DNA of 64,000 nucleotides. Source: Paragordius varius. Taxonomy: Eukaryota > Animalia > Nematomorpha. Made by a program: the position numbers and the translations under genes. This document shows positions 417 to 64,000 of the stretch, piece after piece (the stretch's first letter is position 1; each line of letters begins with the position of its first letter). The stretch lies in contig OZ176057.1 of the NCBI GenBank assembly GCA_964247055.1, positions 1,302,001-1,366,000 on the forward strand, in the 5' to 3' direction. The notes beneath the pieces were generated by a model, which saw only the letters and a program-made list of their open reading frames with translations, made no database searches and was not told where the DNA came from.

Positions 417-554
417 GTGTCATTTAATGAATTAGAAACTTTGCCATACTTGTTGGAGCCACTGGGGTATTTATTTGCCCCTGAAATTGCTGATATGAAA
501 TTAAGAACTAGTCGCCTTATAACACGAAAAAATAATTGTGATTCAGAAATTTAA
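417..554 (+). CDS. ELAC2: Terminal coding exon of upstream ELAC2 (RNase Z long form) copy A; rest of gene lies left of the window
   Basis: cctag acceptor then VSFNELETLPYLLEPLGYLFAPEIADMKLRTSRLITRKNNCDSEI*. Nearly identical to 45802-45930, which follows the AFDNMR exon of ELAC2; ends 3 codons later than copy B. Confidence 0.85.
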   Translation: MSFNELETLPYLLEPLGYLFAPEIADMKLRTSRLITRKNNCDSEI

Positions 555-3548: not shown

Positions 3549-4208
3549 TTAATTTAACTTATAAAATTACTATAGGGAGGTAATCATTGTTACATTGTAA
3601 ATTCATACATATTTTATCTAATTATTTATTATTTATTGGTTCTTAGTATATATATTATAATATAAAAAATGAAATAGCGTTAAAAAGTTAACAATAAAAA
3701 TGTTAAGCATTCATCCGATACGGAATTTAACAGTTTCAGTTACTACAAGGATCTCATTGGTTTTCTTTTTTTTTATCTTTTTCATTTTTAAAAGGGTGCA
3801 AGGGGGAGGGGGATCGCAGGACCATACTACTCTTGCGTTTTACCATATTTTATCTCATCGCACTGTATACCCAGCGTATACCTATAGGTTAATAATACCA
3901 TTGTGAGTTTGTTTCGTTGCGATGAGTTTTCGTGAGGTTCCACGCATTAGCGTGGCTAAAGGGGGAGAAAGATGGGCTGAGGCACAGGCGCCATAGTCGA
4001 AGGGACGCCGGATTTTAAAATTTTCAATTTATTTCAATATAGTGTTATTTAAAAGTTTTCATTTTACATAATACATAAAAAATCACCCATTTATGAGTGT
4101 GGTCAAGATCACGGTTTGAATTTGATTATTTTATTAAAATGCAGAGGTTGCATGGATAGGAACGCCGGGTGCCAGAAATGTAGGCTACGCCTCTGGTTGC
4201 CAGGGTCA

Positions 4209-5507
4209 TCAGCATCTAATTTGATTTTTGGGGTAAAATGATGACTTTTTAAAGGTCTTTTGTAGATTTGGATCACATAAAACATAGATAATTGTATAAA
4301 ATAAGGACAAAACTTTAATGATTTGTGTTATCGGTTTTGCGTAAAGGAGTTTTATGGGCGGTTCCATTTGCAATACATAATATCGGCTAAAACATATATA
4401 AACAATATATGAAGGAGCTATCATAAGGAAATGGCCCAAAATGAGTAGGTACAGAAAAAGGAATTTTTGAATTGATTTTCGGAAAACAGGAGGTAATCTG
4501 TTTCGTTGAATTTTTCTATTTGCACAGACTTTGGTCCAATGACGAAATCGATTAATGCCATAGACGTTATTTAATATAGGTGTCGAAGATTTATTTGACT
4601 TAGCATTGCTCAGCGGTGAAAAACTAGTATTTCCGACAGTAGCCAAGATGATAGGTTCAATTACGTGTGGACTTTTATCGGTAAATACCGTAGCTCGCCG
4701 TTTTTTATATTTCATGAGGTAATGAACAACTACATAAATCATTACGGTCAGGGTAATAGCCAATGTTATCATTATTACTGCATAACTTATTATGATTCGG
4801 CGAACATATTGAACATTATACCTTGATTTTCCATGGTAAATTAGACAAAGGGGTATTTTAGGGGGAATTTTGATTGGTAGGCTATGATTTTTCATAAATG
4901 TTACAACACTTGTAATGTTTAATACTGTACCATATGCAGATTCACTTTTGCAATCTAAAACATTATAAACTATATCGGAATTTAATGTTTGTACCATATA
5001 GACATCACTCAATCGGTAATCAACTATGTGAGGAATGGAAATGATAAAAAACAAGATATACGGTGATAGTATATAAAATTTTTGACTTCTAAGCCACCGT
5101 AATCGAGTAAAATATATCAGTCCATAGAGCCGATCCGCAAATAACATTAAGATGAGGTAACAATTAAGCATAGCCAATATAAGTTTTATGGAGACGACCA
5201 ACTTGGTCAAAAAATTGATAAGCGTACAGGTAGGAGCTAAGTTTCCACCAGCTATATAGTAAAGACTAACTGTGACTAGGGTATTTATGCTACTTAATAT
5301 ATTTACAACCGTTATACATTGTAAAAAATAGTATGGGCGATATGGCGCTTTAATTTTGATTAATAAAACGTACAGGACATAACTGTTAACTAAAAAAGCA
5401 AAAAAGGATAAAAATAGCACTGACCGAATATAGAATACACAAAATCTTTCGGCCGGATTTTGTTTTAACAAAGGTTTAAAACTTGATATCTCTATGATGA
5501 CATTCAT
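4209..5507 (-). CDS. Intronless rhodopsin-like (class A) orphan GPCR, copy A, 432 aa
   Basis: Seven hydrophobic segments; DRY-like ADRLY after TM3, proline in TM4 (SIPH) and TM6 (IAPS), TM7 IIY followed by helix-8-like DPNLQKTFKK; long basic ICL3; ORF preserved in the duplicate. Confidence 0.8.
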   Translation of the reverse strand: MNVIIEISSFKPLLKQNPAERFCVFYIRSVLFLSFFAFLVNSYVLYVLLIKIKAPYRPYYFLQCITVVNILSSINTLVTVSLYYIAGGNLAPTCTLINFLTKLVVSIKLILAMLNCYLILMLFADRLYGLIYFTRLRWLRSQKFYILSPYILFFIISIPHIVDYRLSDVYMVQTLNSDIVYNVLDCKSESAYGTVLNITSVVTFMKNHSLPIKIPPKIPLCLIYHGKSRYNVQYVRRIIISYAVIMITLAITLTVMIYVVVHYLMKYKKRRATVFTDKSPHVIEPIILATVGNTSFSPLSNAKSNKSSTPILNNVYGINRFRHWTKVCANRKIQRNRLPPVFRKSIQKFLFLYLLILGHFLMIAPSYIVYICFSRYYVLQMEPPIKLLYAKPITQIIKVLSLFYTIIYVLCDPNLQKTFKKSSFYPKNQIRC

Positions 5508-5952
5508 GTTCGATATACCTTAAGAAATTGTTAAATTTGAAGTAATTATTCATAATTTTAAAAATTAATCCTGCCAATTGGCTTATTAGGGCGTTAATGA
5601 TAATTTTTTGGCTTACGTTCGATGCAATTGCTTTTAATTATTGTTTATGGATTATGGTGATTAATTTTATGCCGTTTCGAAAAATAATCTCTTAATTGAA
5701 TAAAAATCTTGGTTAAAATCTTAAATTTAGCCGTTTTCGGATATATATATATATTATATATATATACATATATGTAATCAAAATTTATGAAGTAAGAAAA
5801 ATGCTAAATAAAAGAAACTTCAATTTTATAACTCTAATATTAAACTCCGAAATTATATTTCTTATTCAAGTAACAATTTTAAATATTATATATATATATA
5901 TATATATACATCTCTACCCAAATTTATTTTAAAAGATATTAATAGTAATAAA

Positions 5953-6190
5953 CAGAGGCGTAGCTAGATGGGGGAAAGGGGGGCTGATACATCGGGCGCC
6001 ATAGTTGAAGGTTTTAAAAAAATTTTAAATTTATTACAAAAAGATATTTAAAAGTTATAAATTTAAATAATTATACGTACAAAATCACCCATTTATGAGT
6101 GTGGTCATGTGTCCAACGTTTGAAAATGATTATTTTTTTAAAATGCATGGGAATGTGCATCGGACCCCAGAAATGCAAGTTACCCCTCTG
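5953..6190. mobile_element. GC-rich MITE family 4 (CAGAGGCGTAGCTAG...CTACGCCTCTG ends, hAT-like)
   Basis: Terminal inverted repeats and shared core ggcgccatagt..aaatcacccatttatgagtg; copies at about 3950-4195, 52655-52924, 54667-54904 and, inverted, 58185-58405; TSDs not recognisable. Confidence 0.65.
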
Positions 6191-6564
6191 GGTTCACGAT
6201 TCAAAACTAAAATGCATTCTGCATGCAGCTATTTCTAATCGCTTTTTTGATGGTGTTGCTTATTTTAAAGAATGGATTTATAATTTAATTGTTGTTGCTT
6301 TTTTGCCATTGTACTTCTTCTGTTAAAATGTCTAAAGTAAAAGTGCCATTTAATAAAATATTTGCTCCGAGCAGGACTACTATTTTGCTTCCCTCAGTTG
6401 TATTGATTTTTCTTGCATTTGATTTGTAGAGTTCATTTCATGATGGATTTTAATATATTAATGCACTTAAGTTTCCTGGATTTCCCTCAAGAAAACTGAT
6501 TGGAACAAAATAAACGCATTAGAATAATGGACCTATCAGTATGAACCGGTAAGTATTACTTAAG

Positions 6565-6630
6565 TCCTTATGCTTAAATCCTTATGCTTGCATCCTTATG
6601 CTTAAATCCTTATGCTTCAGTCCTTATGCT
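6565..6630. repeat. Short tandem repeat, 14-bp unit tccttatgcttnnn
   Basis: Five units in copy A, two in copy B (about 55284-55308). Confidence 0.7.
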
Positions 6631-8079
6631 CATTTTTGAACAAAAATCATACATTCATCATAAGTCTACTCCTATAGACTTATTAAAATTTCAAAGTGGC
6701 ATAACTTAAAATATTGCGAATTTTTGAATTCTGTAAATTGGAGGATAGAAAGTAAAATATATTTAACAAATAATATATAGGTTTGAGTAATGTTGCTTCA
6801 TCTTTTGGCATTAAAAGGGGTTTACACAACCCCTGTTAAAAAAATATAAATCCTTAAACATGCATCCAAAATCAAAAGTTTTTTAGAAGAAATAGGTACG
6901 CATTTTATCCAGCTATATTTTTTAGATTTTTTTGAGTTATCAAAATTGAAATATTTGCTTACTTCGTGAAATAAAAAAATTTACCCAATTTTTGAATTTT
7001 TTAAATTGGAGGACATAAAATCTGTATGTATAAAAAATAATTTATAGGTTTTAGAAATTGCATTAGTTAACTAAACCGCTTCAAAAAATATATCTGGAAC
7101 TTACATGTAAAATCTAAAGTTTTTTAGAACATGTGCAAATGATCAAACTATATTTTTATTGACAATACAATGGAAACATTATACAAAAAATGATAAAATA
7201 CTAGTACTAGAGTATATTAACCCCATAAAGCCTACTTCAAAAAACACATTAGATTCTTTGGCCATGTGTGATGAGAGCCGACCGATAACATAGAAAAAGC
7301 CACCATTATAAGCCCAGTATTATGGGATAGAAAACATGGTAGGCCAAAATGCGAAATTTATATAGATATTAAAAGGTCTCAACTGCTCCATACATTAGAT
7401 CCCAAAACCAAGGTTAAGAGAGTATATGGTTCGTTAGATTTAATGAAACGCTTTACTTTTTTTGTTAATTGTTTAATTATTAATGCAATAAGGGACATAA
7501 GCATATTTATTAATATGGATCAATTTTATATGTATTTAAATTATATCAATATTGACATGTACAGAATAATTTTTGTAAACGGTATAAAAATATTGTTGGA
7601 TATAATTAAATATAATATATGTGTGAATTATGCCTTTTCCATAAATGAAACAGAGATGTATAATTATAAAATAAATGCAGCGCGTGTATCACAAATATTA
7701 ATACAAATGTTTTACTTTTGATTTTATGTATCAATTCTGATACCATTGTGAAAAAATTGAAATTAATTATATTTATATAATAATTTATCTCTTCGATTTT
7801 AGAAATGTACATAGACTGGAATTGAATAGCATATCCTAAAAAAAGACAATGGTAGCGATTAAAATTCATTATTTTAATTAATTACAGATGTTGGTTTTAT
7901 TATACCATTTGCTACAGTACAGCTTGGTAGGACTTTAATTTTTTATATCAGTTGACTAAAAAATTAGGTATTATATTTCCAATATTCCATTGATTTTGAC
8001 AAATATGAACTATATTTGCCTTCCTATCATTATTCCATAGATGTAAATTTTGATATATAATTTGGACAAAATAGCACAA

Positions 8080-21152
<13,073 letters not shown>

Positions 21153-21661
21153 CTAATGATAAAATATTATATATATATATACATCTAAATAACAGGATAG
21201 AGATGTATTTACAGATTTAAACGATAATATTTTAACATATGGATGTAACTTCTAATAATCAAACAACCAGTCTTGCCCTTTGCAAAAAAATAAGGCGCTG
21301 AATAAAGTTCACCTACCCATTTGTTATACGATTTTTGGTAAAGATCATCTCTATATATATTCAACACATTGGATATTATTAATGAAAAAGTGCCATAATT
21401 TGCGATTTTCTTTTACATAGGCAAAATTTTACACATGTTATTGAATTTTCCTATGCTAATTTATGGTGATGGTTTGGTTTTTGTATTATTGTAAAAAATC
21501 CGTAAAATATAAATTTATATGTAAGAATCTTTGTTTTTGCTTGTTTTAGCACCATCAGTAAGACACGACTGTTTGACATGTTAGTTCATATATCAATTTA
21601 AATTAAAAATATAATTAAACTAAAATAAACCAAAGCAAAGACAAAAATTAAACGACTATAT

Positions 21662-24048
21662 CACAGTGTGCAATTTACTCAAGATATCATACCTAGCTTA
21701 ATATAACCCTTGTGACATATACATCTCAAAAATATAATGATAAAAAAAATTGTCAATGTAGAAAAATTTTTTTTTCACTTTTTCCATATATGGATATATT
21801 TGGAAAAAATCAATTTATTTGCATAATACTTGATCAAAAATTATAAAACTTATATATAATATAAATAATATTAAATAAATATTATTTGTAAATTTTGGCT
21901 CAATATGAATGGATAGATTTAAAATAAACGTCAATTTATTAAATCCAACTAAATTTAGCCCTTTATATTAGTAACATAAAAAATACTTGATGAAAATCAA
22001 TGCGCCAAAATTTAAGTTTAACTTTATATGATAATATAAATATTAATTATATATAATAAAAATTAGATTTTAACTAAAAATTTTTGAAATTTTTTATTTT
22101 ACTAAAATAAAATTAAATTTTTTTAATATCAACAATATAATTATGTCTGGTGATTATAAATATAGCCATATGAATTTTTTTACCTGGATTTTTGAATTGT
22201 AGATGATATTGACTGTTGCTTTACCCTGATATTATGGTATATTTTATAATAATTATAGATAAATATTGTGGAATTTAGATATAACATTGAAAAACCAATG
22301 TAATCCATTGTGAAAATCATATTTTAAAGACAAACTTGCTAATCACAAGCAAACATCCACCAGAAAATTATATTTTGATACATTATGTTTATTGTGTAAT
22401 AAATCTAATACATATAATATATTTAATTTTTTTAATCTAAAATTGTTTACTTGTTTTTGAACAAATGTGGGCAAGGTCGCCAAAAATAAAACTTCTCCAA
22501 AGATTTTTATTTTTAGTTTTAATGTTGAGTTCTGCCAAAGAATTGGTTTCTCTTAGATTACCCATTCTAATTTAAATAAAACTTCTCCATAGATTGCTAT
22601 TTTTTGTTATGTTGAGTTATGCCAGTATTCAGGCACATAATTATTTTAGGTTCATTCTTCAAATTAGAAATGTAAATTTAAAAAATCTTCTGAATACGGC
22701 CAGTTTTTTCTTGAATGATTTTTTAAAAAACGGTTTATGGCAAAAGAAAGTGTTAACGAAGTATACATCAGTTTTACCAAAACTTGGGCTCTAAAAGCTT
22801 ATTTATGGCCCTGAATTATCAATTAAATTTTATGTCATACTTATTTTTAATATAAATGTCTGCAAGTTTTTATAGTTATAGTATGTTGCACGGTTCATGA
22901 GACAAGATTTTGCAGCCCTTTTAATTTTTTTGTTGAATACCATTTCTTCAAATTCTTATATTTAAATCTTTTAAAAGGTGTTGATAATTATTTTATAAAC
23001 TATTTTAATCGGGTATTTCATGTTATTAATATTTTGGCAAAAAAGACTTTCTCAATATCAAGAACTTTTTCAACGAGTTGAATTTCATATACCCGAAGTA
23101 GGATAGGTTGTTTGCGATGGCTTAAGAAGCGCATGATCTAAGAGAAATCAATTCTTTGGCAGAACTCAACATTAAAACTAAAAATGGAAATCTTTGGAGG
23201 AGTTTTATTTTTGGCGACCTTGCCCACATTTGTTCAAAAACAAGTAAACAATTTTATATTAAAAAAATTAAATATATTATATGTATTAGATTTATTAAAC
23301 AATGAACATAATGTATCAAAATATAATTTTCTGGTGGATGTTTGCTTGTGATTAGCAAGTTTGTCATTAAATGATTTTCACAATGGATTACATTGGTTTT
23401 TCAATGTTATATCTAAATTCCAAATATATTTATCTATAATTATTATAAAATATACCATCATATCAGGGTAAAGCAACAGTCAATATCATCTACAATTCAA
23501 AAATCCAGGTAAAAAAATCCATATGGTTATATTTACAATCACCAGACATGATTATATTACAGTTGATATTAAAAAAATTTAATTTTATTTTAGTAAAATA
23601 AAAAATTTCAAAAATTTTTAACTTAGTTAAAACCTAATTTTTATTATATATAAGTAATATTTATATTAACATATAAAGTTAAACTTAAATTTTGGCGCAT
23701 ATTATATTGATTTTCATCAAGTATTTTTTATGTTACTAATATAAAGGGCTAAATTTAGTTGGATTTAATAAATTGACGTTTATTTTAAATCTATCCATTC
23801 ATATTGAGCCAAAATTTGCAAATTATATTTATTTAATATTATTTATATTATATATAAGTTTTATAATTTTTGATCAAGTATTATGCAAATAAATTGATTT
23901 TTTCCGAATATATCCATATATGGAAAAAGTGAAAAAAAAAATTTCTACATTGACAATTTTTTTTATCCTTATATTTTTGAGATGTATATGTCACAAGGGT
24001 TATATTAAGCTAGGTATGATATCTTGAGTAAATTTGTTGCACACTGTG
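21662..24048. mobile_element. 2.4-kb foldback element with CACAGTG...CACTGTG termini (CMC/Transib-like ends)
   Basis: Arms about 21662-22560 and 23135-24048 are reverse complements; ~575-bp spacer; no clean TSD; absent at 63082 in copy B. Confidence 0.8.
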
Positions 24049-24561
24049 TTATGCAAAATACAGATATAACCCTTTATAATACTGTCCTTTCATACTTTTA
24101 GTACAAATTTTTTTAGCGAAACTATAACTAGCAAATAAAAATAAATAACAATTGAAAAATATAAATATCTTAGGTTTATTCTGTGATATATACATATTCG
24201 AAAATTATTGATTCCAAACAAGCTGTTTTGTTTTAGTAAATTTTAGGCTATATAGTCTACAAAACAAATAAATTATAAACCTTAATAATCAAGTTAAAAT
24301 ATTATTAGAAATAATTTTATTTTAAATTTTAGGGCTTGGTATTTTATTATATAGATATATCGGTTCAATCAGGTATATTTTAAAATATAATAAATATTTT
24401 ATTTTAATAGTTTTTGGCTTATTTAAAAATTTGTTGAAAAGGTTTACTTTACAATCCAAAATTAAAATTTAATTAAAAATGTTAAGTATTGGCTTATTTT
24501 ATAAGTTAATTAAAGGTTTTATTAAAATTTAGACAAGTTGAGTTATTATTATTTAGTTTTA

Positions 24562-24847
24562 CAGTAAAAATTGTAATTATACGGACAAAACGTGAAAATA
24601 TAAAGACAAATAAATACTTTTTATAAACAATTACACTTTTTTAATCTTAATTTTTTACAATAAAACTCATTGTTTTTAACTACAAAGTATAAAGTAATGT
24701 AAATTGGTAACACAATCAAATATGTATACTATTGTAATTAAATATTTTTATAGGATAACGAAGGTTTAAAAAAGTATGGCTGTCTTTTGAAAAAAAAAAT
24801 TGTCTTTATATTGTTATATTTTGTCCGTATAATTTCATTTTGTACTG
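24562..24847. mobile_element. MITE family 2 (Tc1/mariner-type, TA|CAGTAAAAATTG...TTTACTG|TA)
   Basis: ~100-bp TIRs containing ttatacggacaaaacg and aagacaaccatac. Other copies at about 9167-9425, 10574-10838, 15713-16005 (plus half copies to 16302), 17708-17770, 36125-36424, 45465-45690. Confidence 0.8.
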
Positions 24848-24922
24848 TATTTTATCAGGGTTTCAAACCAGGCTAAAGAATGAAATACCGATATGGTTTC
24901 TAAACGGGTGTAACTATATATA

Positions 24923-25242
24923 TACCATTTACAATTCAATTTCACCCTTAAACAATTCAAATTCACCCTTGAACAATTCCAATTCACCCTCAAATAAAAT
25001 ATATGTTTTTTAAGATTAAAATTTACTGATATTTTATATATTTTTTTAAAAAATTATGTTTTAAATTAAAATAATACAAAAAAGAATAAACTATAACATA
25101 AACACATATTTCATATTAATAATGAGTTATATTAGTTCGAAAATACATAATTTATTTTTAGGGTGAATTTGAATTGTTCAAGGGTGAATTTGAGTTGCGA
25201 GGGTGAATATTGTTCAGGGGTGAATTTGAACTGTAAATGGTA
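24923..25242. mobile_element. MITE family 1 copy
   Basis: Complete TIRs, 21-bp subterminal repeats, same internal core as other copies. Confidence 0.85.
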
Positions 25243-25730
25243 TATCTTGTTAAATTAAAATAAAGTAAAATAAACGTAACCTAAATTTTAAATCTATAAC
25301 GAGTGCTGTTTTTTGACCATGTAGAACAAAAAATGGGTCGATTATTTGATTCTGGGGCCGGTTCTAGAAACCCCTGATTAATTGGCTTTGAAATTTTCAC
25401 ATACCAACTATTTTCGATAAATTTTAAAACATTTTATACATTTATTGTACGAGGAATCAAATATTGAACGATCTAAATACCGTAAAACTTTATTTTAATA
25501 ATTATTATATTTTATATCTTTATTGAGTTTTATTAACAAATAATTGAAATATATGACGTGTCAAACTGAAATCGAACAAAATAAAATTAAAAGAGCATTG
25601 TTCACACCCCTATAACTATGAAACTTGAAAATTAGTTCCGGTCCCACGGATTTAATAAAATTATATTTCAATAAATTTTTATATGAAAAAGTTTAAAATG
25701 CATTTAAAAATTTTTTTTCTCTCTCTCCAG

Positions 25731-26485
25731 GGACTACCGCTTTGCCAGAAAAACGATTTAAGGCGCATTCGATCGTATTGTTCAGTAAATCCAAATTTTT
25801 GCGTGAAAATGTTTTCGAACAAAATTTACAAACAACTTCAGCCATCAACTTACATGCTCCCGCTCTCAATAACATTAATAAAAACTTTGAGAGCCTAAGT
25901 TTAGAATGCGATGAATGTGCTCAAAGGACAAATTCCACTAATATTATTCTTGAATCATCCAAAAAAGGGAATTCAAGCCTACGTAAGGCTGAAAATCTCG
26001 AAATCACAAATGTTGAAGGCAACAATAATATCCACGATTTGGTAAAATATGAGCCCATTACTCTTCCGATAGTGGTAACTCCTAAAGCGTTCCAAGTAAG
26101 TGGTTTCAGATATAATACTTTAAACAATAAAACTTGGGACTTGTTAAAAGCCCTTACTTACTAATTTAGATATTATGGAAAGGTATTACTTTCTTAAACA
26201 CATTCCTATCTTAAAACATAGGACTTCAGTGAATTATGAGACTAGTATAATTATTTTTTTTATTAAAAAAAATCTTGTTTATAGGAGTTTAATTGCAAAG
26301 TTTAGTATAATCACGTATCGTATTTAAAATTTTTGTACATTCGTCCCTAGATTATTTTAGAGTACCTGTACACAGGTGTAAGTCGAGTCTCTAAAGAAAA
26401 TTTTGCCGAAGTCCAAGTTGCTTGTGATGCATTAGTGATTGAAAGCGATTCCCTTACCGATATTTGCAAAAGTTATCAGGAATAA
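25731..26485 (+). CDS. BTB/POZ-domain protein, 3' exons (5' part uncertain, possibly truncated or pseudogenic)
   Basis: Exon 25731-26095 (KRFKAHSIVLFSKSKFL...PITLPIVVTPKAFQ|gtaagt) splices in phase to 26351-26485 (IILEYLYTG...VQVACDAL...*), giving canonical BTB motifs. Candidate upstream exon GLFCDIYIF at 24174. Confidence 0.7.
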
Positions 26486-29400
26486 TGCTCATTTATATAT
26501 AATGAAATTATCATTTCAAACTAATTATAGAATTTATGAAATGTTTGTGAAAAGATATTCCAGTATTTAAATTATATATTTTTTTGCATAACATCTTTAA
26601 TTAAATAAGTAGCAATATCATGATAAAGTTATTTTTTTTTAAAAGACATCGAATGTTTTTTTCACTTAAACGCAAAAACATGAGAATACTAATTCTAAAT
26701 TTTAATGAATTGTGTTACAGGCACAAAACAAATTTTTGTTAATTGACAAATTTAATTTGGCTAAGAAACATGGGTAAACTAAGAGTTAAATTAAATTTTT
26801 TGGACCAATCACAGTCTAAAGGACTTATTACAATTCTATAGATTATAATAATAATAATAGATGATGGTAAATGACGGATTGATTATGTTTAATTACAGTT
26901 GTAAAATCCGTAATATAAGAGTAGTTATTAAATTAATTTCTATGAAATTCCTAAGTAGCTATACTCTAAATCTAGGGTAACCTAGTATTGATTTTCAGTT
27001 TATTTTCGTGTTTTCAGTTTAGTTTTTATAAATATAAATTAAATTTAATTTAAATTCTAACCAACTGCATTTATACCAAAATTGCAAAGTTGGATGTATA
27101 TATGAAATCGATATGTGAAAACCCCAAGTAGTCAAACAGTTGTGTCTTACTGATGAGTGCCAACAAGCACGAAACTAGTGTACGATTACTATTGCCGAAA
27201 GGGTTTCACATATCGTTTATGATTTCTGTTAATAATTATCTTTCTATTAATTTTATATTTAATTTTCGATTATCATTATATTACACATTTTACAACTGTT
27301 ATAATAATAATAATAATAGTTTATATCGATTGTGATTGCAGTCTTATACAGCTATAATCATTAAATAAATAATAGGAGCTATAAAATGGGATAATATTTT
27401 GATAAAAAATTATAGATATTTAAAATCCATGCGTTTGATGAAAAAAATAATAAAATTGGAACGAAGGATGTGTACGTGAATACGGCATTAGATTTATGCA
27501 CTATAAGCGACTTGAGATTTATAATCCCGATTAAGCTACATTTTAGTTAGGATTGAGAATTTGACCCCTGTAAAATATACCATTTATAATTCAAATTCAC
27601 CCTTGAAACAATTCAAATTCACCATCGAACAATTTAAAATCACCCTTGAACAATTCAATTCACCCTTGAACATTTCAAATTCACCCTAAAAAAACAATTA
27701 TGCGTTTTCGCACTAATAAAACTCATTAATTTGAAATATATCTTTATGGCATAGTTTATTATTTTTTCAGTTTTATTTGAATTTAACACAAAATTTTATT
27801 TTTTAAAAATATATTAAAATATAGGTAATTTTTGATTTTAAAAAATACATAATTGAGGGTGAATTTGAATTGTTCAAAGCGAATTTGCATTGTTCAAGTA
27901 TGATTTTAAATTGTAAATGGCATATAATAAGTTATCATTACACACATTTATGGTTGAAGCAGGTATCATATCTGCAAAATGTATAAAGTTTTTAAAACAA
28001 ACATAAAGTTTACCGTGATCGTGTAGAATAAATAAATTTAATATACCAAGTATATAAATGATAATAACGTGATAAATATATGCTTGTAGATTTTGATCAC
28101 TAAATTAATTGATGGGTAGTCTAAAGAATTTTACTGGCACCTAAACTAGGTCAAAAATTATATACAGAGACTAAAATGTCTATATATTTGCTCATGAAAC
28201 AATATAATTTTTCAAAACAATAAATAAAAATACATAGTTTTGCCATTTATTATTTATTATATATCGTAGTGTGATTAATATAACTTTTTTGACTGCTATT
28301 TAAACGCTTTCCACTGTTATCAAATTTTATAATCAGAATCTACCTACTCATATATTTGTGCAGAGCTTGCATATTTTTCTAAAATAATCTGATTTAGGGT
28401 CACAAGGATGATTCACTAAAAAAATGGTTATCTATAGATAAAACCGTTACCACTTCATTACGTTTGGGGTATTTTTTTAATATAGAGCGATTAAGAGAGT
28501 TTCTACTGGGTCAAATCATAAAATCTTAAATATGCAGTCATTTATTTTTTTGTACAATTGTAAAAAATTTACATCTCAGACAATTTTTCGTTATTTGGGT
28601 GGGTTTTATTTATATTTTAGGACTTTAGAGGTAGTTTTTCACACTAGAGCGATTTGAAATTCAAATTAAAAATATTTAAGGTATTAAGTCAAAAAATACT
28701 TTTCGTCTTTTAGACAGATAATACAATTTTTTTCCAAAAAAGAAAATATCTTTTTCTCAAACTTTTTTGCCGCTATTTTCTTTACACTTTCTTAATCGCT
28801 AATGCAACATTTAAATAGATGTATATTATATGAATATATTTTGATTTTAATATCAGCTGTTCGTTTTGAGAGTGTTTTTGGAGCTCTCCCGATTTTAGGT
28901 TATAGAAGTCACAAAACTATAAAAAATGAAACCCTTTTATAACATGAGAACAATATAATATAAATAAAATAACTTTCAAAACTGTGGTTAGTATACACAA
29001 TTGAGCTCTGGGATATAAAACTACTCAATATGTAAATTAGGAAAAAAAGTGAAATGAAGTGTTAAAAGTATAAAATCGCATGCCAAACTTCTATATATAT
29101 CCTTTTGTAACGTAACTAAAAATGGTGAAAAATTAGTTATATTGAGTGCCTAGTTTTTTATCAGTTTTGTTTGAAATCTAACAAATATTAACACTTCGAA
29201 TCAGATTGGGGCAGATAAATACCCCAGACATTATTTAAATTGAAATTTTTAAAAACTACTGAAAGGAACGGACCCAATTTATGCTTTTTTTCTAATAAAA
29301 AATATATAAATAAGTTTAAATATAGAAATAACATTTAGTTATTAAAAAAGGGTCCATAGCAAACTACCTACTTATTTTATAACATTAATATATGCGGCTT

Positions 29401-30509
29401 ATTTATTTTTTAAGCTAAAATTAAAGCTAATTATTATTTAAATCACCTAACATTGATAGAAACAAAGAATGGCTTTTTTCTTAAATTAAGTTAATAACAA
29501 TCATGTCGACTGAATTATTTCCTTTGATTTTACCTTAAAAGTAATGTATTTTAAATAAATATTACATAATTAGTTCAAACTTTTTCCATATTCCCACCTA
29601 CCATATTTTCCCAATGTGTATCGAAGGACTAAAATAAATGTGTTTTATCCAAGATTTTATAAATCCCCATATATATTTGTGGCCCTATTTTTTTTGCATC
29701 AAAAATGTAAGCTGCGAGCGACTTCATTGGTATTGTATCTCACTAAAGGCTAGTTTATAATTTTTTTGCATGTTAAATTCGATTATAATAATGTCATTAT
29801 ATTCCATCTAAACAAACTGGACAAAAAAGATGCCCCATCAAATTAAAGTATTTAAAAAAGCTATGTTTGATTAATTAAAATTTGCTTGGTCTGATGCATT
29901 CTTTTATGCCCTTTTTAACAAACTGTTGATAGTCATTACTTTTATTCAAGTGGATATATAATTTTTATACATAATGTTCATTTGATTTTCATATTTCTGT
30001 CCGCGATGACGTCTTTGATTAAAATTTAATTATTAAACATTGTCCTGTTTTAGATGAAAATTTTATATTATTTATTTGTAATTTTTAGAGTTTAGAAATT
30101 GAACAGCTCCAAAACCAAATAATAATCGGATATTAATTTCAAAAAACAGTTTGAAATAAAGTTTTAATTTAAAATTCTTACCATATCTATTGTATTTGCC
30201 TGCTGTATCAGCAAAGTAACTTACAAAGTCTAATGGTGATATAGTTGTTTACGCTTTAAATACATGCGCCTTAAAAAAGTTCAGATAACATAAATTTTCC
30301 CCAACAGATTAAATACTTTATAGGATATTTAAAATCGGTGTTGAATATAAATTTTCCCAAAAGATGAAGTGTAAATGTTATTTTATTTTTAACAAAGCAT
30401 TCTTACGAATTAAATTTATATTTAAAAATATCTCAAATTGTGTTGATTAAGAATTTTTTATAAATATATCAGCAGGTACACTATAAAACACTTTTCCAAT
30501 ATGTAATAC

Positions 30510-33215
30510 ATGTTTTTTCACCCCAAGCCTTTGCTGAAAACAATAAAATTTTCCAATTCAAATTTTAAAAAATTTATGTCACATTTATTGGCTGATATGA
30601 AGTCATCAGGAATACGGAAAAAACAAAAATTTTCTGACAATACTTTTGGAAATGTTCCGACAACTGCCTACTTAGAGGTTATTGGATGTGGAGCAAGGGG
30701 TTCTCCTAAAAGCGTGCATCTCTTTACAAATACTTTAAGGTTAGATATTATTAAAAATTTTATTAAGTTAAGTTTAAACTATTTTTGAAAATTTTTTTTG
30801 GAAGGGCATTTTAAATTGGCGCATCGAATATTTATCAAATGCCGATGGTGTGACGAATTAAATATTAATGCTATTATAAATATTTAAAAAGTAAGTAAAA
30901 AATATAAAAACTAATTATTTACTTTTATTGTCAAATTTTTAATTTACTCTGGCATATTAAATATTGTTAATTTTAATTTAAAAGTGATCATTCAAAGCCT
31001 ACGTTAACCTTAGTCTTTACTGTAAATAATATTTTTATATAAAATTTATCAAAACATTATATATAATCTGATTTTAGCAACAAAACTTTTTACAATTATA
31101 GTTTGTAAGAATTTCTAATCTTAAATTTAAATAGCTTAAGTTTAAAATCTGAAATGTTTTAAGATATCACTTAAATGATTTTAGATATATGTTTAATGTC
31201 GGTGAAGGTATTCAACGGTTAGTCACTGAACATAAATGCAAACTTTCTCGGCTCTCAGGTATATAGATATTTTATCGCAATTACACTATATTTCAATTTA
31301 TCTACTCTCTATAATGGATTCATAAATAAATTTTTGGGTAGTAACACAATCATTATATGTAATTTAATTACTTTTTTCCCAATACTTATATGATATTTGC
31401 AGTTTGAGTTTATTTTTGGAATTAATTGTTTAACATACTATACGGAGCAAATGGTACTAACTAATAAAATAAATATTCTTCGATTATTATCTTGTAAATA
31501 GTTGATTGTAATTTTGTTTGAAATTAAACATCAATAGAAACCATTTTTAAATTATATGTATTATTTTGCCATCGAAAAAATTTTGTCAATATTTTATACC
31601 CTATTTTATCCAAAAATTTAAGGTATATTTATTACACATTCATCATGGGACAACCTTGGTGGCTTACCTGGCATCCTTTTATGTTTACGAGATATAAACA
31701 TTAAAAAGGTTACTTTACATGGTCCACCCAGGGCTGAGAATCTTTTCATAATGACCAAGGGGTTTATGGAAACGCAAGACATAGAAATTGGTAATTAAAG
31801 TGAGTAGCGTAAGAAATTATAGTAGGAGAAATCGACACGAAATAAGTTAATTGGTTCGGCAATGATTATATAATTATTGGTGCACCAAATAACTATGCAA
31901 TGTCCTTTTCTCTGAAAGTTTTCTCGTTAATCAAACATTTAAACGGTAGAAATATTGTAAAAATTAAACCTTATTTAATTATAATTTTTTGAACGCTTTA
32001 AAACATTTCTTATATATTTCGCATGGAATTAAATATTAATATATCAGATTTCTCATTCTTTTTATTTGATTTTATATAATTTATAAAATTTGCAAAGTTA
32101 ATATTTTCTGGTAACACACATTAAATTGCGTATTTTTTTTTCGCTTTGCTTAGAAAAATATGATTACCACAAACAGATATATAATGATGGTTGTATTCAA
32201 GTTGAGTATGTACCTATATATCCCACGGATTTTAATCTGGAAAACGCTGTATCATATGGTGATATGAATGGCCAAAATCCGTGTCCTATCCCTCACGATT
32301 TAAGCGCCACCACTGATTATTCTGATCATACGTCATCCTCTTCCACATCTGACTCCTCTAATATAAATGAAAATAACCAAAAATGTAAACTTAAAAAACT
32401 TGAAAATACGAGAGAAGCTTTAGGGGATATTGAAAGGAACAAATCCAAAAAGCCTGGAGACAGAGATACAGTTTTAGCTTTTATAGTTAAGGTTTGATAT
32501 ACATTTCTATATTATATTTGATTGATTAATTAGAATCTTAGACTCTTCAAACACTTAGCTGATTATTAAGTTAAATGGTTAAGATGTAAAATGTTAGGAT
32601 TATAAAGTTTTGATTGAAAAGTGTTCAATTTGGTTAAAAGTGTTGTTTAAATAAATTTTATAAATAAAAAAAAACTGGATTTATTGTGGTTTAATAATGT
32701 GGGATTCAAAAAATTTTGCGTTTGATCGAAAATTCGTTTAAAAGAAATGGTATAATAGTTAAAACGGGTTGGTTGGAGGATGACAAATTTTTAGTAATGA
32801 TAATATTTTTTTAGCTGTATTTAAATTCACCCTAAAAATAAATTATGTGTTTTCGAACTAATATAACTCATTATTAATATGAAATATATCTTTATGGCAT
32901 AGCTAATTATTTTATCAGTATTATTTAAATTTAGAATTTTTTTTTATTTTTTTAAATATATATATATATATATAAATATAGGTAATTTTAGTCCTTAAAA
33001 ACATACAAGGGTGAATTTGAATTGTTCAAGGGTGAATTTAAATTGTTCAAGGGTGAATTTGAATTGTTTTAGGGTGACTTTAAATTGTACAAGGGGGAAT
33101 TTGAATTGTTCAAGGGTGAATTCGAATTGTTCAAGGGTAAATTTGAATTGTTCAAGGGTGAATTTGAATTGTTCGAGGGTGAATTTGTATTGTTTAAGGG
33201 TCAATTTGTGTAAAT

Positions 33216-33250
<35 letters not shown>

Positions 33251-35223
33251 CCTTTTCTTACACACAGATGGCAGATAAACCTGGTCAATTAAATTTCCAA
33301 AAATGTTTGGAATTCAAAGTTCCCCCAAACAGTCCAAAATTGTCGCAACTTAAAAATGGGCAAGATATAATTTTGGATGATGGCACAATGGTAGATTATT
33401 AAATTTAATCTAATTTGATATTTGCAAAATTTGCATTGGAAAATTAAAAATATTTTTTTTTGCTCTAATTTACTGATTTTAAAAATTTTCATTTTTATCA
33501 TAATAAAACATTTGAAACATTTACCCGTCAATAATACATTTTTGACACATTTATAAATACCATTTTTTTTCAATTAAAAAAAATTACGTTCAAAATATTT
33601 ATATATCGGTTAAAAGAATACATAAACACATGGCATATTTTTGCATTTAATATAAATTTAAATTTTTTTTATTTATAATTATTATTTTTATTGCATTTTC
33701 AAGGTGAAATCTAGCGATGTGTTAGGTAGCACGGAAAAAGGTCAATCTTTTGCAGTTATTGAATGTCCAAATGTAAAATATCTCAACAATTTAATTCAAA
33801 ATACTTCATTTGATCCTTATTTCACGCAAAATTACAATCGTGATCATGGCAAAAGTATTTATTCTTCTTATGGTAATATGTATTTATATCATTTGCACTT
33901 TAAGAATGTCCTTGAACATTTCAAGTTGGGCCTTGAACATTTCAAGTTGGTCCTTGACCATTTTAAGTTGGTCCTTGAACACTTTAAGTTAGTCCTTGAA
34001 CATTTCAAGTTGGTTTTTGAACATTTCAAATTGGTCCTTGAAAAGTTCAAGTGGTTCTTGAACAGTTCAAGTTGGTTCTTGAACAGTCCAAATGGCTCCT
34101 TGAACATTTCAAGTTGGTCCTTGAACACTTTAAGTTCCTCTTTAAACACTTTATGGTCCTTGAACATTTTAAGTTGGTCCTTGAACATTTCAAGTTGGTT
34201 CTTGAACATTTCAAATTGGTTCTTGATTTCAAGTTGGTCCTTGAACATTTTAAGTTGGTCCTTGAACAGTTCAAGTTGGTCTTTGAACACTTCAAGAGTG
34301 TCCTTGAATATTTCAAGTTGGTCCTTGAACACTTTAAGTAGATTCTTGAACACTTCAAGAGTGTCCTTAACACTTCAAGTTAGTCCTTGAACATTTCAAG
34401 TTGGTCCTTAAACAGTTGGTCCTTGAACAGTTCAAATTGGTCCTTGAACACTTCAAATTGGTCCTTGAACACTTCAAGTTGGTTCTTGAACACTTCAAAT
34501 TGGTCTTTGAACACTTCAAATTGGTCCTTGAACACTTCAAATTGGTCCTTGAACAGTTCAATTTGGTCCTTGAACATTTCAAGTTGGTCCTTGAACACTT
34601 CAAATTGGTCCTTTGACTTTTTTGTTTTGTGTTTAACTTTTATCAATCAAATCGTATATAATTCATCTATTTTATCGGTCTTAAACTATTTTTCATTATT
34701 TTAAATTAATTTTAAATCAATAGCAACTTGAGAAACCGTATATATCTTTATTAATTTCTTAAAATTATTTTGGATATTTATAAGATTTTAACACGTAATT
34801 AAAAATATATAAGATTTCTGGGTATTATTTACAATTTTTCATTAAATATTTAAAAGTTAATAATTTTGTTATATTGGAAAAAAATAATTTAAAAAAGATT
34901 TTAAAATAAAAAAATAAATGCAAATTTAATGTTTAGAACTGTTTAAGGACATTCTTGAAATGCAAATGTTATATATAAATCAAAAAAATTTTATTATGGA
35001 ATTTTTACCTGTATAATTTTAATTTATACTATATATATATATATATATCCTTATAGCTTTTGCGGTCAAAAATATTTTTCCCCCCTAACAAACAAGATTT
35101 TTTTGCTAATAAATCATTATTAATATTTTTTGTTTAAAAATAATTCTAAAATTAATAAAAAAATTTAAATATATATATATTTTAGAAGATAAAATATATA
35201 ATTTTCAATTTTAAGATTTTTTG

Positions 35224-35271
<48 letters not shown>

Positions 35272-38200
35272 TAAATTTATAATCAATATTAATTTTTTTA
35301 AATATCAAATAAAAAAAATAGAAAATGAAAAAACCCTAGCTGCCATAGTACATTTCAGTCCAGAAAGTATTGTTAAACTTCCCCTATATCAAGATTGGAT
35401 TGCAAAGTATGAATATTATTTAAATATTTTTTTTAAAAATTTTTTTTTGAAAAAACTAATTTTTAGGAATAATTTAGTATTTTATTAAATATTTGTAAGT
35501 AAAAAATAAAAATTTAGTTATGATTTATCCAGGTATGAAAGCGAAATTTATGAATTTAAAATACATGCGGCGATATATAAAATATTTTCAAATTTAAATA
35601 TATTAAATAATTTTAAATAAATATTCGACATTTTTCTCGGTTAAGATAAAATTATTTTAATGTTTTGGGATTTTAAATATACTTATTACCGATATAATTA
35701 TAATTTTAAGTTTTCAAAGTATGCGTGACGTGGTTATATTATTAAAGGAAATATTATAAATTTAAATTGTAAATTTAAATAAATTTATATAAATTTATCT
35801 GCGAAGATTCTAAAGTTATGATTAAGTTTTTTCAAACTTTTTTTCTTTTTTAAATACAGGTGCATAAAGATTGCCTCTAGTCAGCACATTTATAGATTAA
35901 ATATTCCTTATAATTTTAAACTTATTTTTTAAATAATTATATGAAAATTTTTATTTTTATAACCTATATCTCAATTTTTTGGGGTTTTAAATGTTGATAA
36001 TTATCAATAATTTTCTACAAAATTGCTTTTATAATATACAATTTATACATTTAAACTATTCATTACATATTTTTCGTACAATTCTGCGCTTTATAAAGAA
36101 TTTAATTGTAAATGTGTAAATATAGAAATATATATAAACTGAAATTATACGGACAAAACGTAAAAATATAACGACAAATATTTTTTTCTAAAAAAACAAC
36201 CATATTTTTTAAATCTTGATTTATTTTAATATAAGTCACTAAATGGCAAAGTGTGAAATAAAAATATAAATTACTAACACAACAATCAATTCTATATTTT
36301 ACAATTGTAACTAAATAGCTTATATGGTAAAAATAAAGGTTTATAAAAGTATGGTTTGTCTTTTAGATAAAAATATTTGTCTTTATTTTATTATGTTTTG
36401 TCCGTAAAAATTTAATTTTTACTGTATATATTTATAAAACAAGGTGTTTATTACGAGTAAATTTTGTCAACCTTTTAAATATATAAAATGAATTATATAT
36501 GGAATCCTTAAATTGACCCTTAAACATATCAATGTTACGCTAAAACAAATAGTTTTTTTTGAATATTAAAAAATACTTATAATATTACTTTACATACTAT
36601 TTACAGTTGAAATTTACCCTTAAACAATTCAAAATAATCTCACCCTAAAATAAATTAGGTGTTTTTAAGTTAAAAATTACCTGTATATTTTAATAGATAT
36701 TTTCAAAAATTGAAATTTCGTAACTATGCCATAAGGATATATTTTATAATAATGATGGAGTTATATTAGCCCCCGAAAACACATAATTAATTCATTTTTA
36801 GGGTGCATTTGAATAAATGGTATATTTTTTTAATATTTTACTGTACTCATGAAATTTCATAAAAAGTTATATACTACGGGAAAAATTATAAACTATATAT
36901 CATATAAATTATGTCATTTAATGAATTATAAGTTTATTAAAAATTGTTCAAGGGGGAATTTATAACGTAAAGGGTATATTTACTTATATATACCATTTAC
37001 AGTTCAAATTCACCTTTGAACAATTCAAATTCACCCTCGAACAATTCAAATTCACCCTTAAACAATTCAAATTCACCCTAAAATTAATTATGTGTTTTCG
37101 AACTAATGAAACTCATTATTAATATTTATTTTTTCAGTATTATTTTAATATAAAACAAAATTTTTATTTGTTTAAAATATATAAAAATAAACATATATAT
37201 TTTATTTGAGGGTGATTTGAATTGTTCAAGGCTGAATTTGAATTGTTCAAGGGTGAATTCAAATTGTTCGTGAGTGAATTTAAATTGTTCAAGGATGAAT
37301 TTGAATTGTTTAAGGGTGAATTTAAATTGTAAATGGTAAATTTGAATTATTTGAGGGTGAAGAATTGTTCAAGGTGAATTTGAATTGTTTGAGGGTAAAT
37401 TTGAATTGTTCAAGGGTGAATTTGAACTATAAATGGTATATATTTTTACATAAATTTTTGATATAATTTTGCACTAAAAAAATCTTTTTATGATTTTTTT
37501 TCAGATTTGGACCACACACTACCCACATTTACATAAATGATGGAAATAATAATTGTTTATCACTGTTAAGTCCCCTAGAACTTCAAACTAAATTAAATTG
37601 CTTGGATTCTAGAATATTCCCTGCACCACCTATCATTAAATTTGACCCGACAAGTTGCTTAGAAAATGATAAAATCTCACAAAGTTTGCTTGAAAGCAAG
37701 CTAGTAGATGGAATAATGACAGAAAAAAATAGTTTTATTCACAATAATATACCATTTACAATTCAATTTCACCCTTAAACAATTCAAATTCACCCTTGAA
37801 CAATTCAAATTCACCCTCAAATAAAATATAAGTTTTTTAAGATTAAATATTACCTATATTTTATATATTTTTAAAAAATAAAAATTATGTTTTAAATTAA
37901 AATAATACTGAAAAAATAATAAACTATACCATAAACATATATTACATATTAATAATTAGTTATATTAGTTCGAAAAAACATAATTTATTTTTAGGGTGAA
38001 TTTGAATTGTTCAAAGGTGAATTTGAATTGTTCAAGGGTGAATTTGAATTGTTCGAAGGTGAATTTGAATTGTTCAAGGGTGAATTTGAACTGTAAATGG
38101 TATATTATTATAGGTGGAAAAAATGGGAATAATCCAGCTTATAATAATATATATGGTAAACCACTTGATAAATTTTATTTGAGACCATATAAAAATAATA

Positions 38201-41200
38201 CTGTTAATGTCAACATTAATGAAAACAATGTAATGAACGTTAATGAAAATTATGTGCCCTATGCCAATCAGCTGATATTGGATAGCAATAACAATATGAA
38301 TAATACCACTGATAAAGGTTGTTTGAAATATTAAAAAAAAATTTTTTATGTTAAAAATTGTAATGTTAATATTTTTAATAAATTTAATCATTAAATAGGA
38401 TAATTTTTTATTGATTAAATCGTATTTTTATTAATATTGCTTGCTTTTCAAATGTTTTTTTGCAGTAACAATATTTAGTATCTTTGTAATATTTTAATTC
38501 ATTTTTTTTACATATAAATTTATATATAAAATCAATTTTTTTGGTATTTTGAATATTATTTTTCTGCAAATATTTAGAGGTGTCAGAATTATTGACTTAC
38601 GATAAGGAAGCGTTTATGATGAGTTTGACTAAAGCGAAACGGCTTGGTAAGTAATTTATTAATTAATATACCATTTACAGTTTAATTTCACCCTTGAACA
38701 ATTCAAATTCACCCTCGAACAATTCAAATTCACCCTTGAACAATTCAAATTCACCCTCAAATATATGTTTTTTGAGATTAAAAATTACCTATATTTTATA
38801 TATTTTCCAAAAAAAAAGTTTTGTTTTAAATTAAAATAATACTGAAAAAATAATAAACTATACCATAAACATATATTTCATATTAATAATGAATTATACT
38901 ATTTGGAAAATACATAATTATTTTTAGAATGAATTTGAATTGTTCGAAGGTGAATTTGAATTGTTCAAGGGTGAATTTGAATTGTATGAGGGACTTAAAC
39001 TGTAAATGGTATATATTATAATTTTTTAGGAATTCAAAATTATTGTATCATTAAAATTATTTTTTTTTACATTTAAAACATACATATAATAAGATCAATA
39101 TTATAAAGCGATCAATAATCAAAATGTGCAAAATGAAATAGCTCAAACTGTCACGTGGCCATCTTCTCAACCAATAAAAATAGGCACCTCACATGACCAA
39201 CCACCAACCTATCAACCAATCAAATCAGACAGCACTGATCTTGAAGATCATTCTCATTCTCCAATCAAAACACAAGCGCATGACTCAAAAGTCACGTGTC
39301 CTCCATCTCTGGCATCTCAACCAATCGAAAAAGGAACCGATCCACAGAATTTATTAAGCTCTTGTTCTTACCCAGAATTCATATTTTTGGGGACGGGTAG
39401 TGCCGTACCCAACAAAACTCGTAACGTGAGTGCCATATGGTGTAATTTACGCGCGAAAAATGACATAAATTATGTAATTGAAAATGAAACTAATAATAAG
39501 ATTAATACAACAAATAATAAAATTAATGTAACCAATAATGAAATTAATGTGAACAAGAATGAAATTAATCAAAACATAATTAATGATGTTAATGAGACCA
39601 AGAATGAAATTAATGTTACCAAGAATGAAATTTATGTAACCAATAATGAAATTAATGTTACTAATAATGAAATTAATGTTACTAATAATGATGTTAATCA
39701 AAACATTAATGATGTTAATGAAACTAGTAATTGTAAGATTAATACAACAAATAATGAAATTAATCAAAACAATAATGATATTAATGAGATTTCATTGCTT
39801 TTGGATTGTGGAGAAGGTACTTTTGGACAAATGGTGCGATTTTTTGGATTCTTAAATCAAAAGTCTGAAAAGAATGGTATTTTTTATTAATTTATTAGTA
39901 TTTATACGATTTTAATGATTTTATTTTTGCTTTTATTTTAATAAACTATGTGTTGATCATTATATTTTATCTTTTTGATAATTTAAAGTACTATAAAATG
40001 TTTGATGAAAAAAATTAATCTTAATATGTTAACAAATTTTTTTATTAATTTTATTTTTACTAATATATTTTAATACATATGGAGAAAATATATGTTGATT
40101 TTTATTTAGTTAGCTATGATATTAAATAAATAGTAAAATTTATTCCTTTTTTATATAAAAAAAATAATTTCAAACTTTTTATTTATATTTTGAAAATAGA
40201 AAAAAATTATCAACTCTTCCCTAGTTATTGTCAAACACATTTGGATAATGCCCAAATTAATAGAATGTTAAATCAGCTGATCTGCATATATATCAGCCAT
40301 CTTCATGCCGACCACCATCTGGGCCTTTTACAATTCATTATGTATGAAATTATTATTATTGATTTTTTTATTTAAAATAATTAATTTTTACATAGTTTAA
40401 ATTTTTTGGTTTTTCATAATTTGTGTTTAATTTTACAACAATTTTTTTTATATTTCTATAGCTTTATAAGCTGAATTTATCATAAAAATAAATTATTTTT
40501 TTAATAGTTTTTTCATAAAAAGTTTTATAGTTTGTTATATATACCATTTACAGTCAAATTCACCCTTGAACAATTCAAATTCACCCTAAAAATAAATTAG
40601 GTATTTTCGAACTAATAAAACTCATTATTAATACTAAATATATGTTTATGTTATAGTTTATTATTTTAATTTAAAACAAAATTTTTGTTTTTTAAAAATA
40701 TATAAAAATATTGGTTATTTTTAATATTAAAAACATATATTTTATATGAGGGTCAATTTTAATTGTTTAAGGGTGAAATTGAATTGTTTGAGGGTGAAAT
40801 GAAGTGTAAATAGTATATTAGATGTTATCTATTTTTTATAATAGTTAATTTATAGTATACCTAATTTTGCAACAATGTATGTTATATATCATAAAACATT
40901 AATAAATTATCCAAAAGGGGTCTTTTGTCATATTTAAAATAATTTATATATATATATATATATATTTCAAATTCACCCTTGAACAATTCAAATTCGTTCT
41001 AAAATTAATTAGTTGTTTTCGAACTAGTATATCAATAATATGAAATATATCTTTATGGCACATATTATTTAATATTTTTTCATTATTATATTATTAATTA
41101 TTTTAAACAAAATTTTTTTTAATATAAAAATATAGGTAATTTTTTATTTTTATAAATAAATTATTTTAGGGTGAATTTGAATTGTTTAAGGGTGAATTCG

Positions 41201-44065: not shown

Positions 44066-44109
<44 letters not shown>

Positions 44110-47073: not shown

Positions 47074-47156
47074 TTAATGGCAAAATATTTGTGAAAAATA
47101 CGAATGAATGACTGTATTTAGAATATGGCATTAAATTTAGATATTATCATGTAGGC

Positions 47157-54585: not shown

Positions 54586-54629
<44 letters not shown>

Positions 54630-56876: not shown

Positions 56877-64000
<7,124 letters not shown>

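Follow-up and report, generated by a model that had tools for sequence, protein, structure and literature searches.

Locus and Tandem Duplication

The DNA considered here is a stretch of 64,000 nucleotides from the nematomorph Paragordius varius (GenBank assembly GCA_964247055.1, contig OZ176057.1, positions 1,302,001 to 1,366,000; hereafter "the window"). It contains a foldback-type transposable element (21662-24048) that is situated between two tandemly duplicated units and is flanked on either side by a gene lacking its 5' part, a netrin gene (netrin-A) on the left and a gene with a putative BTB domain (BTB-2) on the right. The assembly comprises 110.6 Mb in 44 contigs at a G+C content of approximately 25%, and the locus lies inside a contig of 6.35 Mb. 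The sequence compared consisted of the window together with 30 kb to its left and 20 kb to its right (114 kb); negative coordinates denote bases left of the window. The coordinates of all features are collected in Table 1.

An earlier reading of the window from its letters alone (the original prediction) had proposed a tandem duplication of about 40 kb with the element at its junction. This duplication proved to be real and consists of two units, copy 1 and copy 2, which contain a BTB gene, ELAC2, an intronless seven-transmembrane (7TM)-like open reading frame (ORF) and a netrin gene. The netrin and BTB exons occur in just two copies each genome-wide. The right-hand parts of the two units, designated A (368-21607) in copy 1 and B (45751-63070) in copy 2, match in a patchy manner at 75-94% identity. 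When the DNA between 24049 and 45010 was aligned with the sequence left of the window, 25316-44949 was found to match -21666 to -56 at 80-88% identity.

At the left breakpoint, the homology between A and B stops at 21661 in A and 63082 in B, on a common GACTATAT, after which copy A enters the element and copy B continues with TTACCCGAG. The original prediction had placed this end at 21660 and 63082; its location at the edge of the element and the coordinate in B were correct, and the end in A is one base off. At the right breakpoint, the homology between copy 2 and copy 1 begins immediately behind the last base of the element, at 24049. Here, TTATGCAAAATACAGA follows the element, and in copy 1 at -22857 the identical 16 bases (16/16 match) are preceded by ATTATT. 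Both breakpoints therefore coincide with the ends of the element to the base, and the flanking trinucleotides, TAT on the left and TTA on the right, confirm that the element has no matching target site duplication (TSD). A comparison of the DNA right of 63082 with 24049-32000, which served as a test for a simple insertion, revealed no homology, and no match to copy 2 was found left of -22858. Neither an element nor a footprint is present at the outer ends of the duplication.

Truncation of the Flanking Genes

The exons of both genes were searched one by one against profiles. The 5' exon of netrin-B, which extends beyond the right border of the window, has no second copy in the 114 kb or in the whole assembly. 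The earlier claim that netrin-A possesses no equivalent of this exon was thus borne out, and this includes the interval from 24 to 30.5 kb, in which no netrin-A 5' exon was found.

The assignment of the second gene is based on weak single-exon matches to the BTB profile (E ~0.1) in combination with splice-site and reading-frame logic. In copy 1, its upstream exons are located left of -22857 and comprise an exon with an ATG near -24220 and an exon at -23532 to -23362 with fitting acceptor, donor and phase. Neither copy 2 nor any other part of the genome contains a second copy of either exon. Hence, the BTB gene adjoining the element indeed lacks a start exon, as previously stated, its upstream exons being single-copy and situated to the left of the copy-1 breakpoint.

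Anatomy and Family of the Element

With its long inverted arms, its lack of coding capacity and its dispersed, TSD-flanked copies, the element is a foldback-type non-autonomous DNA transposon. Its arms align at 95% identity (21658-22558 versus 23136-24052) and are separated by 577 bp, and only short ORFs are present. At least 20 copies with paired arms, 89-95% identical, were identified in the assembly. Both termini of the window copy are formed by CACAGTGTGCAA, and CACAGTG is found at both ends of nearly all family copies, the exception being L003, in which one end reads CAAAGTG. This aberrant end is of the type termed a.

Two types of ends can be distinguished. The a end consists of CACAGTGTGCAA-CAAATTTACTCAAG and the b end of CACAGTGTGCAA-AATTGGGGGTATTTATTTTCTCAGG, which corresponds to approximately 11 extra nucleotides after the first 12. 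The differences between both types are confined to the outer ~65 nucleotides; no fixed differences between a- and b-arms, or relative to the middle segment (P/Q), exist between positions ~66 and 885. Consequently, the point of a crossover within the arms is not mappable by arm-type diagnostics. The family TSD measures 3 bp and is perfect in 15 of 18 a/b copies, with one mismatch in each of the other three. The perfect TSDs are TAA (six copies), TTA (five), TAT (two), TCT and CAA (one each). Without exception, the 18 family copies with a TSD or near-TSD are a/b. The same pairing extends to three diverged subfamilies, in which three elements each combine a short-spacer with a long-spacer end and each possess a perfect TSD. 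The window copy is the sole a/a copy in the family.

In all TSD-flanked elements of four diverged subfamilies (L005, L053:8040-9879, L055:4923-9892, and L056:8857-9873), one end is of the short-spacer a type and the other of the long-spacer b type. The spacer difference between a and b in these subfamilies amounts to 7-11 nucleotides, located behind the common CACAGTGTGCAA terminus. This conserved asymmetry of the ends recalls the 12/23 rule or the end spacing of the P element.

The middle segment occurs in either orientation relative to the a and b ends (10 copies one way and six the other among copies L003-L043). This indicates that recombination between arms takes place in the family, and the flip-flop of the middle looks like inversion through such recombination. 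One further copy departs from the a/b rule: L052:226-2560 (G000:C2:12918525-12920859) is the sole b/b copy, its flanks are 100% mirror images over at least 100 nucleotides, and the element itself is old, with a terminal branch of 0.066. Its origin lies either in a palindromic duplication of recent date or in a fold-back artefact of the assembly, and the copy is of a different kind from the window copy. Another copy, 5.1 kb in length, harbors a nested non-LTR (long terminal repeat) retrotransposon with an 876-codon endonuclease/reverse-transcriptase ORF (L044:1390-4020, minus strand).

Relative Ages and Selection

The window copy carries 21 private substitutions at 2,180 comparable sites (~1%), ordinary copies carrying between four and 45. 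Its terminal branch in a maximum-likelihood (ML) tree is 0.017, and it forms the sister of the youngest clade, nested among the younger family members; measured over windows of 300 bp, its distance to the nearest relatives is 0-2%. The duplicated units are far more diverged. Their alignable non-coding blocks show Kimura two-parameter (K2P) distances of 0.09-0.15, which corresponds to a non-coding divergence of at least 0.045-0.075 per lineage, with higher values at synonymous sites. The proportion of synonymous differences (pS) between the units is 0.15-0.39 in exons of BTB, of ELAC2 and of the epidermal growth factor (EGF) part of netrin, and the DNA that directly touches the element shows just 72-85% identity to its paralogue. 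On every scale used, the element is estimated to be several-fold to more than 10-fold younger than the duplication.

Two tracts, 3900-6589 versus 52606-55308 and 19927-21180 versus 61393-62670, are far closer to each other than the remainder of the units, with K2P distances of 0.03-0.06, and 5546-6437 is almost identical to its counterpart. In these tracts, the first of which covers the intronless 7TM-like ORF (432 codons; 4209-5507, minus strand) and the second the netrin Laminin_N exon, pS is 0.05-0.07. This closeness suggests gene conversion between the units as their probable origin.

In the coding regions of both units, all reading frames are open and free of stop codons, and neither of the two indels in the netrin Laminin_N exon (408 codons) shifts the frame. 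The ratio of non-synonymous to synonymous differences (pN/pS) between the units ranges from 0.04 to 0.25. Pooling of the four netrin exons outside the converted tract yielded a pS of 0.31 and a pN of 0.047, hence a ratio of 0.15, and the BTB exons gave 0.14 and 0.18. If one of the two copies had drifted since the duplication, a pairwise pN/pS of approximately 0.5 or more would be expected. As the observed ratios are far below this value, netrin-A and BTB-2 must both have been constrained for nearly all of the time since the duplication. Such prolonged selection on both genes contradicts their decapitation at the birth of the duplication; most likely, the headless genes look intact because their decapitation is recent, which would also resolve the seeming paradox that a netrin copy without a head appears to be maintained by selection. 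In annotation, netrin-A and BTB-2 should be regarded as truncated genes or pseudogenes of very recent origin and not as ancient fragments. The palindromic element may now act as a putative promoter and drive divergent transcription of both genes, as was suggested earlier; such a symmetric promoter is not needed to account for the intact frames.

Indications of a Chimeric Copy

Several properties set the window copy apart from its relatives. Each of its flanks is a family-typical target, either TAT or TTA, that is present as a single copy at the paralogous empty site, an arrangement which fits the non-matching TSD halves produced by ectopic recombination. The arms differ from each other at 21 sites, compared to four to 14 in normal young copies. 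An excess of divergence between the arms, relative to normal copies, is the criterion by which Galileo chimeras were recognized (Delprat et al., 2009; PMC2775673). Moreover, the private changes are unevenly distributed, with 13 in the left and five in the right arm (binomial P = 0.016), or, counted along the element, 15 in the left 918 sites and six in the remaining 1,262. This skew may indicate that the left parent was older than the right one. Finally, two a ends can be joined by homologous exchange but not by a transposase.

Proposed Order of Events

These findings are best reconciled by a recent deletion, to which we assign a probability of roughly 0.6. In this scenario, two foldback insertions that postdate the duplication recombined with each other, deleting the heads of both genes together with the original duplication junction and leaving behind a young chimeric element. 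The series of events would have started with an old tandem duplication of a 40-45 kb segment including complete netrin and BTB genes, after which both copies of each gene would have evolved under purifying selection. Much later, a TAT in intron 1 of netrin-A might have become the target of a foldback copy in a->b polarity, and a TTA in intron 2 of BTB-2 that of a second copy of opposite polarity (b->a). As the arms of a foldback element are mutually inverted, two such elements always share directly oriented homology, irrespective of their relative orientation. A crossover in directly oriented arms, i.e., ectopic homologous recombination, could consequently have removed everything between the two elements. 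The loss would amount to at least 5 kb, with the netrin side contributing no less than 3.6 kb and the BTB side no less than 1.5 kb, in addition to the original junction, and would have included the 5' exon and promoter of netrin-A as well as the promoter and first two exons of BTB-2. The expected product is a single chimera with a/a ends, arms of unequal age and no TSD, since the TSD half on its left would come from one parent and that on its right from the other. Deletion between transposon copies is a known kind of event, as illustrated by Galileo-like chimeric copies.

The order of events differs from that proposed originally: the transposon probably did not create the duplication but recently removed its middle. 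The locus would then represent a clean and datable natural example of how inverted-repeat elements permit a deletion between oppositely oriented insertions, with the a/b end type serving as the marker that exposes the chimera.

A number of points weigh against this reconstruction. In the single assembly at hand, neither the pre-deletion allele nor the parental pair of elements was observed. With about 25-30 copies per 110 Mb, two insertions within ~10 kb of each other are unlikely a priori unless the family hops locally; some clustering of family copies was seen. A change-point test along the element was just suggestive (permutation P = 0.08). The dating is rough, as the non-coding divergence was derived from alignable blocks alone and two tracts have apparently been converted. 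Lastly, an assembly collapse, though of low probability, would give the same chimera-like sequence.

Alternative Explanations

Other routes to the same arrangement were considered. An unlikely one starts from a single a/b insertion, for which an aberrant transposition, with one end re-inserting nearby (sister chromatid), would have caused a flanking deletion, and the b tip would later have been overwritten from the other arm. Flanking deletions beside cut-and-paste elements are well known, and TTA, the new flank, is among the sequences that the family typically targets. However, an extra conversion step is required in this case, and the two a tips are not identical, as the left one carries a private 4-nucleotide deletion. 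The skew of private substitutions between the arms also fits two parents better than one.

According to the original prediction, the element, or a pair of elements, built the duplication itself, through unequal recombination between flanking copies or through sister-chromatid or hybrid-element transposition, and netrin-A and BTB-2 would have been headless ever since. The location of the element exactly at the junction and its lack of a TSD are compatible with this origin, and alternative transposition of Ac in maize and of P in Drosophila is known to produce tandem duplications with a single element at their junction. Nevertheless, this origin is improbable on several grounds. The junction copy, with ~1% private changes, is about 5-10 times younger than the units it would have generated (K2P 0.09-0.15, pS 0.15-0.39), and its position in the family tree is not a basal one. 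Moreover, the headless genes have open frames and a pN/pS of ~0.15 at a pS of ~0.3, a record of purifying selection on both, the outer borders of the duplication bear no element or footprint, and an a/a copy is not a product of transposase reactions.

The probability of an assembly collapse is similarly low. In this case, the gene heads would lie between two foldback copies at the real locus, the assembler would have merged these copies, and the merged product would be exactly the chimera seen. Against this, neither a second copy nor an orphan contig with the netrin 5' exon or BTB exon 2 was found in the assembly, which is resolved into only 44 contigs for 110.6 Mb, and long reads readily bridge a repeat of 2.4 kb.

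It is very unlikely that an old junction element was excised and the gap repaired from a younger ectopic family copy, which would place young sequence at an old site. Template-directed replacement is known for P elements, and annealing of two strands that were each copied from an a end could yield an a/a element. Yet this pathway leaves the purifying selection on long-headless genes unexplained, involves more steps than the deletion between two insertions and has no parallel in any other family copy.

A false join of two haplotigs, which the original prediction had listed as its alternative, has nothing in its favor beyond the repeat at the join and is refuted by the 9-15% non-coding divergence, many indels and private transposon insertions that separate the copies and by the extension of copy 1 over 22.9 kb to the left, and of copy 2 to the right, into unique DNA within the 6.35-Mb contig.

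Further Repeats at the Locus

Besides the foldback element at the junction, other repeats were observed in and near the window. An intron of netrin-A contains another insertion of the foldback type, a 4.3-kb palindrome (11298-15589) that copy B lacks; its arms show 96-97% identity, and it includes internal tandem repeats of ~117 bp. Left of the window, copy 1 carries a repeat insertion of ~620 bp (-22730 to -22157) just to the right of the breakpoint-equivalent site. Copy 2 does not have this insertion, and a piece related to it was found at -25982 to -25792. In addition, a repeat of ~270-330 bp resembling miniature inverted-repeat transposable elements (MITEs) occurs at least 10 times in the window, with copies in either orientation and 77-91% identity.

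Table 1. Coordinates of the features at the locus (negative numbers, bases left of the window; strand ".", no strand assigned).
Feature	Position	Strand	Remarks
Duplication copy 1	-22857..21661	.	~44.5 kb; part in the window (1..21661) is its right-hand 21.7 kb
Duplication copy 2	24049..63082	.	39.0 kb
Foldback element, putative a/a chimera	21662..24048	.	2,387 bp, non-coding; arms of ~900 bp and 577-bp middle
Left arm	21662..22558	+	outer ~65 nucleotides are an a-type end with private 4-nucleotide deletion; 13 of 21 private substitutions
Middle segment, non-palindromic	22559..23135	.	either orientation relative to a/b ends across the family
Right arm	23136..24048	-	canonical a-type end; 5 private substitutions; up to 100% identity to other copies (300-bp windows)
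TAT in netrin-A intron 1, candidate TSD half of left parental insertion	21659..21661	.	empty site in copy B is GACTA-TAT-TTACCC, single TAT
TTA in BTB-2 intron 2, candidate TSD half of right parental insertion	24049..24051	.	empty site in copy 1 is ATTATT-TTA-TGCAAAAT, single TTA
Paralogous empty site in netrin-B intron 1, end of A/B homology	63080..63085	.	
Netrin-A exon, most 5' exon left in copy A	19909..21135	-	Laminin_N profile positions 83-156 and first laminin EGF; open frame; 96% identity to B
Netrin-B counterpart exon	61312..62685	-	
Netrin-B 5' exon, 3' end in the window	63890..64000	-	open frame 63890-66712, running outside the window
BTB-2 exon	25709..26107	+	BTB profile positions 18-51, weak; splice acceptor before exon; upstream exons missing in copy 2
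MITE-like repeat copies	24913-25234, 27608-27934, 32819-33067, 37741-38073, 38698-39014, 40554-40818, 43326-43599, 44122-44440	both	

Superfamily Placement and End Pairing

The termini and TSDs of the family point in several directions. The CACAGTG heptamer equals the consensus of recombination signal sequences (RSS), and the family thereby shares the CAC-heptamer termini of Transib/RAG-like elements. A further likeness to these elements is a spacer difference of 7-11 nucleotides between the terminus and a conserved subterminal motif of the two ends. The TSD hallmark of Transib, in contrast, is 5 bp long and GC-rich (Kapitonov and Jurka, 2005; PMC1131882), whereas that of the present family is 3 bp long and AT-rich (TTA or TAA in 11 of 15 perfect cases), which speaks against an assignment to Transib. 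A profile search of the genome for a RAG1-like transposase (Pfam PF12940) returned nothing, with control genomes also silent.

The same 11 TTA or TAA duplications conform to the 3-bp TWA duplication of PIF/Harbinger elements. The Harbinger transposase profile DDE_Tnp_4 has 89 matches in the genome, and the CACAGTGTGCAA terminus was present at none of the six such loci examined. Many of the 89 matches occur in mirrored pairs (e.g., C6:3944129-3945208 and C3:7376638-7377429), and palindromised transposase fragments seem to be common in this genome. For CACTA/CMC, both the CAC termini and the TSD length (2-4 bp) fit; no tnp2-type transposase (PF02992) was found in the genome, and the controls were again silent.

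The long copies L044 and L045 were tried as autonomous partners and rejected, as they contain the nested non-LTR retrotransposon and other inserts and no transposase. Two longer foldback relatives with an a-like terminus (L050:101-3033 and L055:4923-9892) carry a decayed ORF with the motifs CPWC... and PPLHIKLG..., which has 66 genome matches, often in mirrored pairs. Searches with this ORF against Pfam and PDB returned no match, and a language-model comparison (Atlas) revealed a weak likeness to clusters with RAG1 ZnH2/ZnC2 modules. A RAG/Transib-like cut-and-paste system with 3-bp TSDs, in which ends are paired by a rule similar to the 12/23 rule, is conceivable but doubtful. If such a rule applied, the a/a chimera in the window would be a frozen element that is no longer able to move.

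Comparison With Known Systems

Alternative transposition, i.e., sister-chromatid and reversed-ends transposition of Ac/fAc in maize and hybrid element insertion of the P element, generates tandem duplications and flanking deletions. The locus described here resembles its products in the position of the element exactly at the junction, with one old and one new flank and no TSD. It differs from them in the ends, as alternative transposition keeps a normal end pair and the window copy is a/a, and in being younger than the duplication.

The deletions mediated by Alu and L1 recombination in primates have a similar outcome. There, non-allelic homologous recombination removes an interval and leaves a hybrid copy without matching TSDs, and a lost interval with one remaining hybrid copy is also proposed here. 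Those deletions involve retrotransposons in direct orientation, whereas the inverted arms of foldback elements would permit a deletion between insertions of opposite polarity and thereby give rise to an a/a copy.

Close parallels are found in Galileo, a foldback-like element of the P superfamily at inversion breakpoints of Drosophila buzzatii (Delprat et al., 2009; PMC2775673). Both systems possess long arms of the foldback type, and in both, ectopic recombination between two insertions in opposite orientation accounts, or would account, for the chimeric copies. Shared features also comprise non-matching TSD halves, each of which is single-copy at the empty site, and arms that diverge more in the chimeras, here a presumed one, than in normal copies. 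Unlike those of Galileo, the parental copies are here deduced and were not themselves sampled, and chimerism has weaker statistical support; in addition, the TSD measures 3 bp compared to 7 bp in Galileo. The main difference concerns the product, since recombination between Galileo copies resulted in an inversion flanked by two chimeras, whereas at the present locus it would have resulted in a deletion that leaves a single one.

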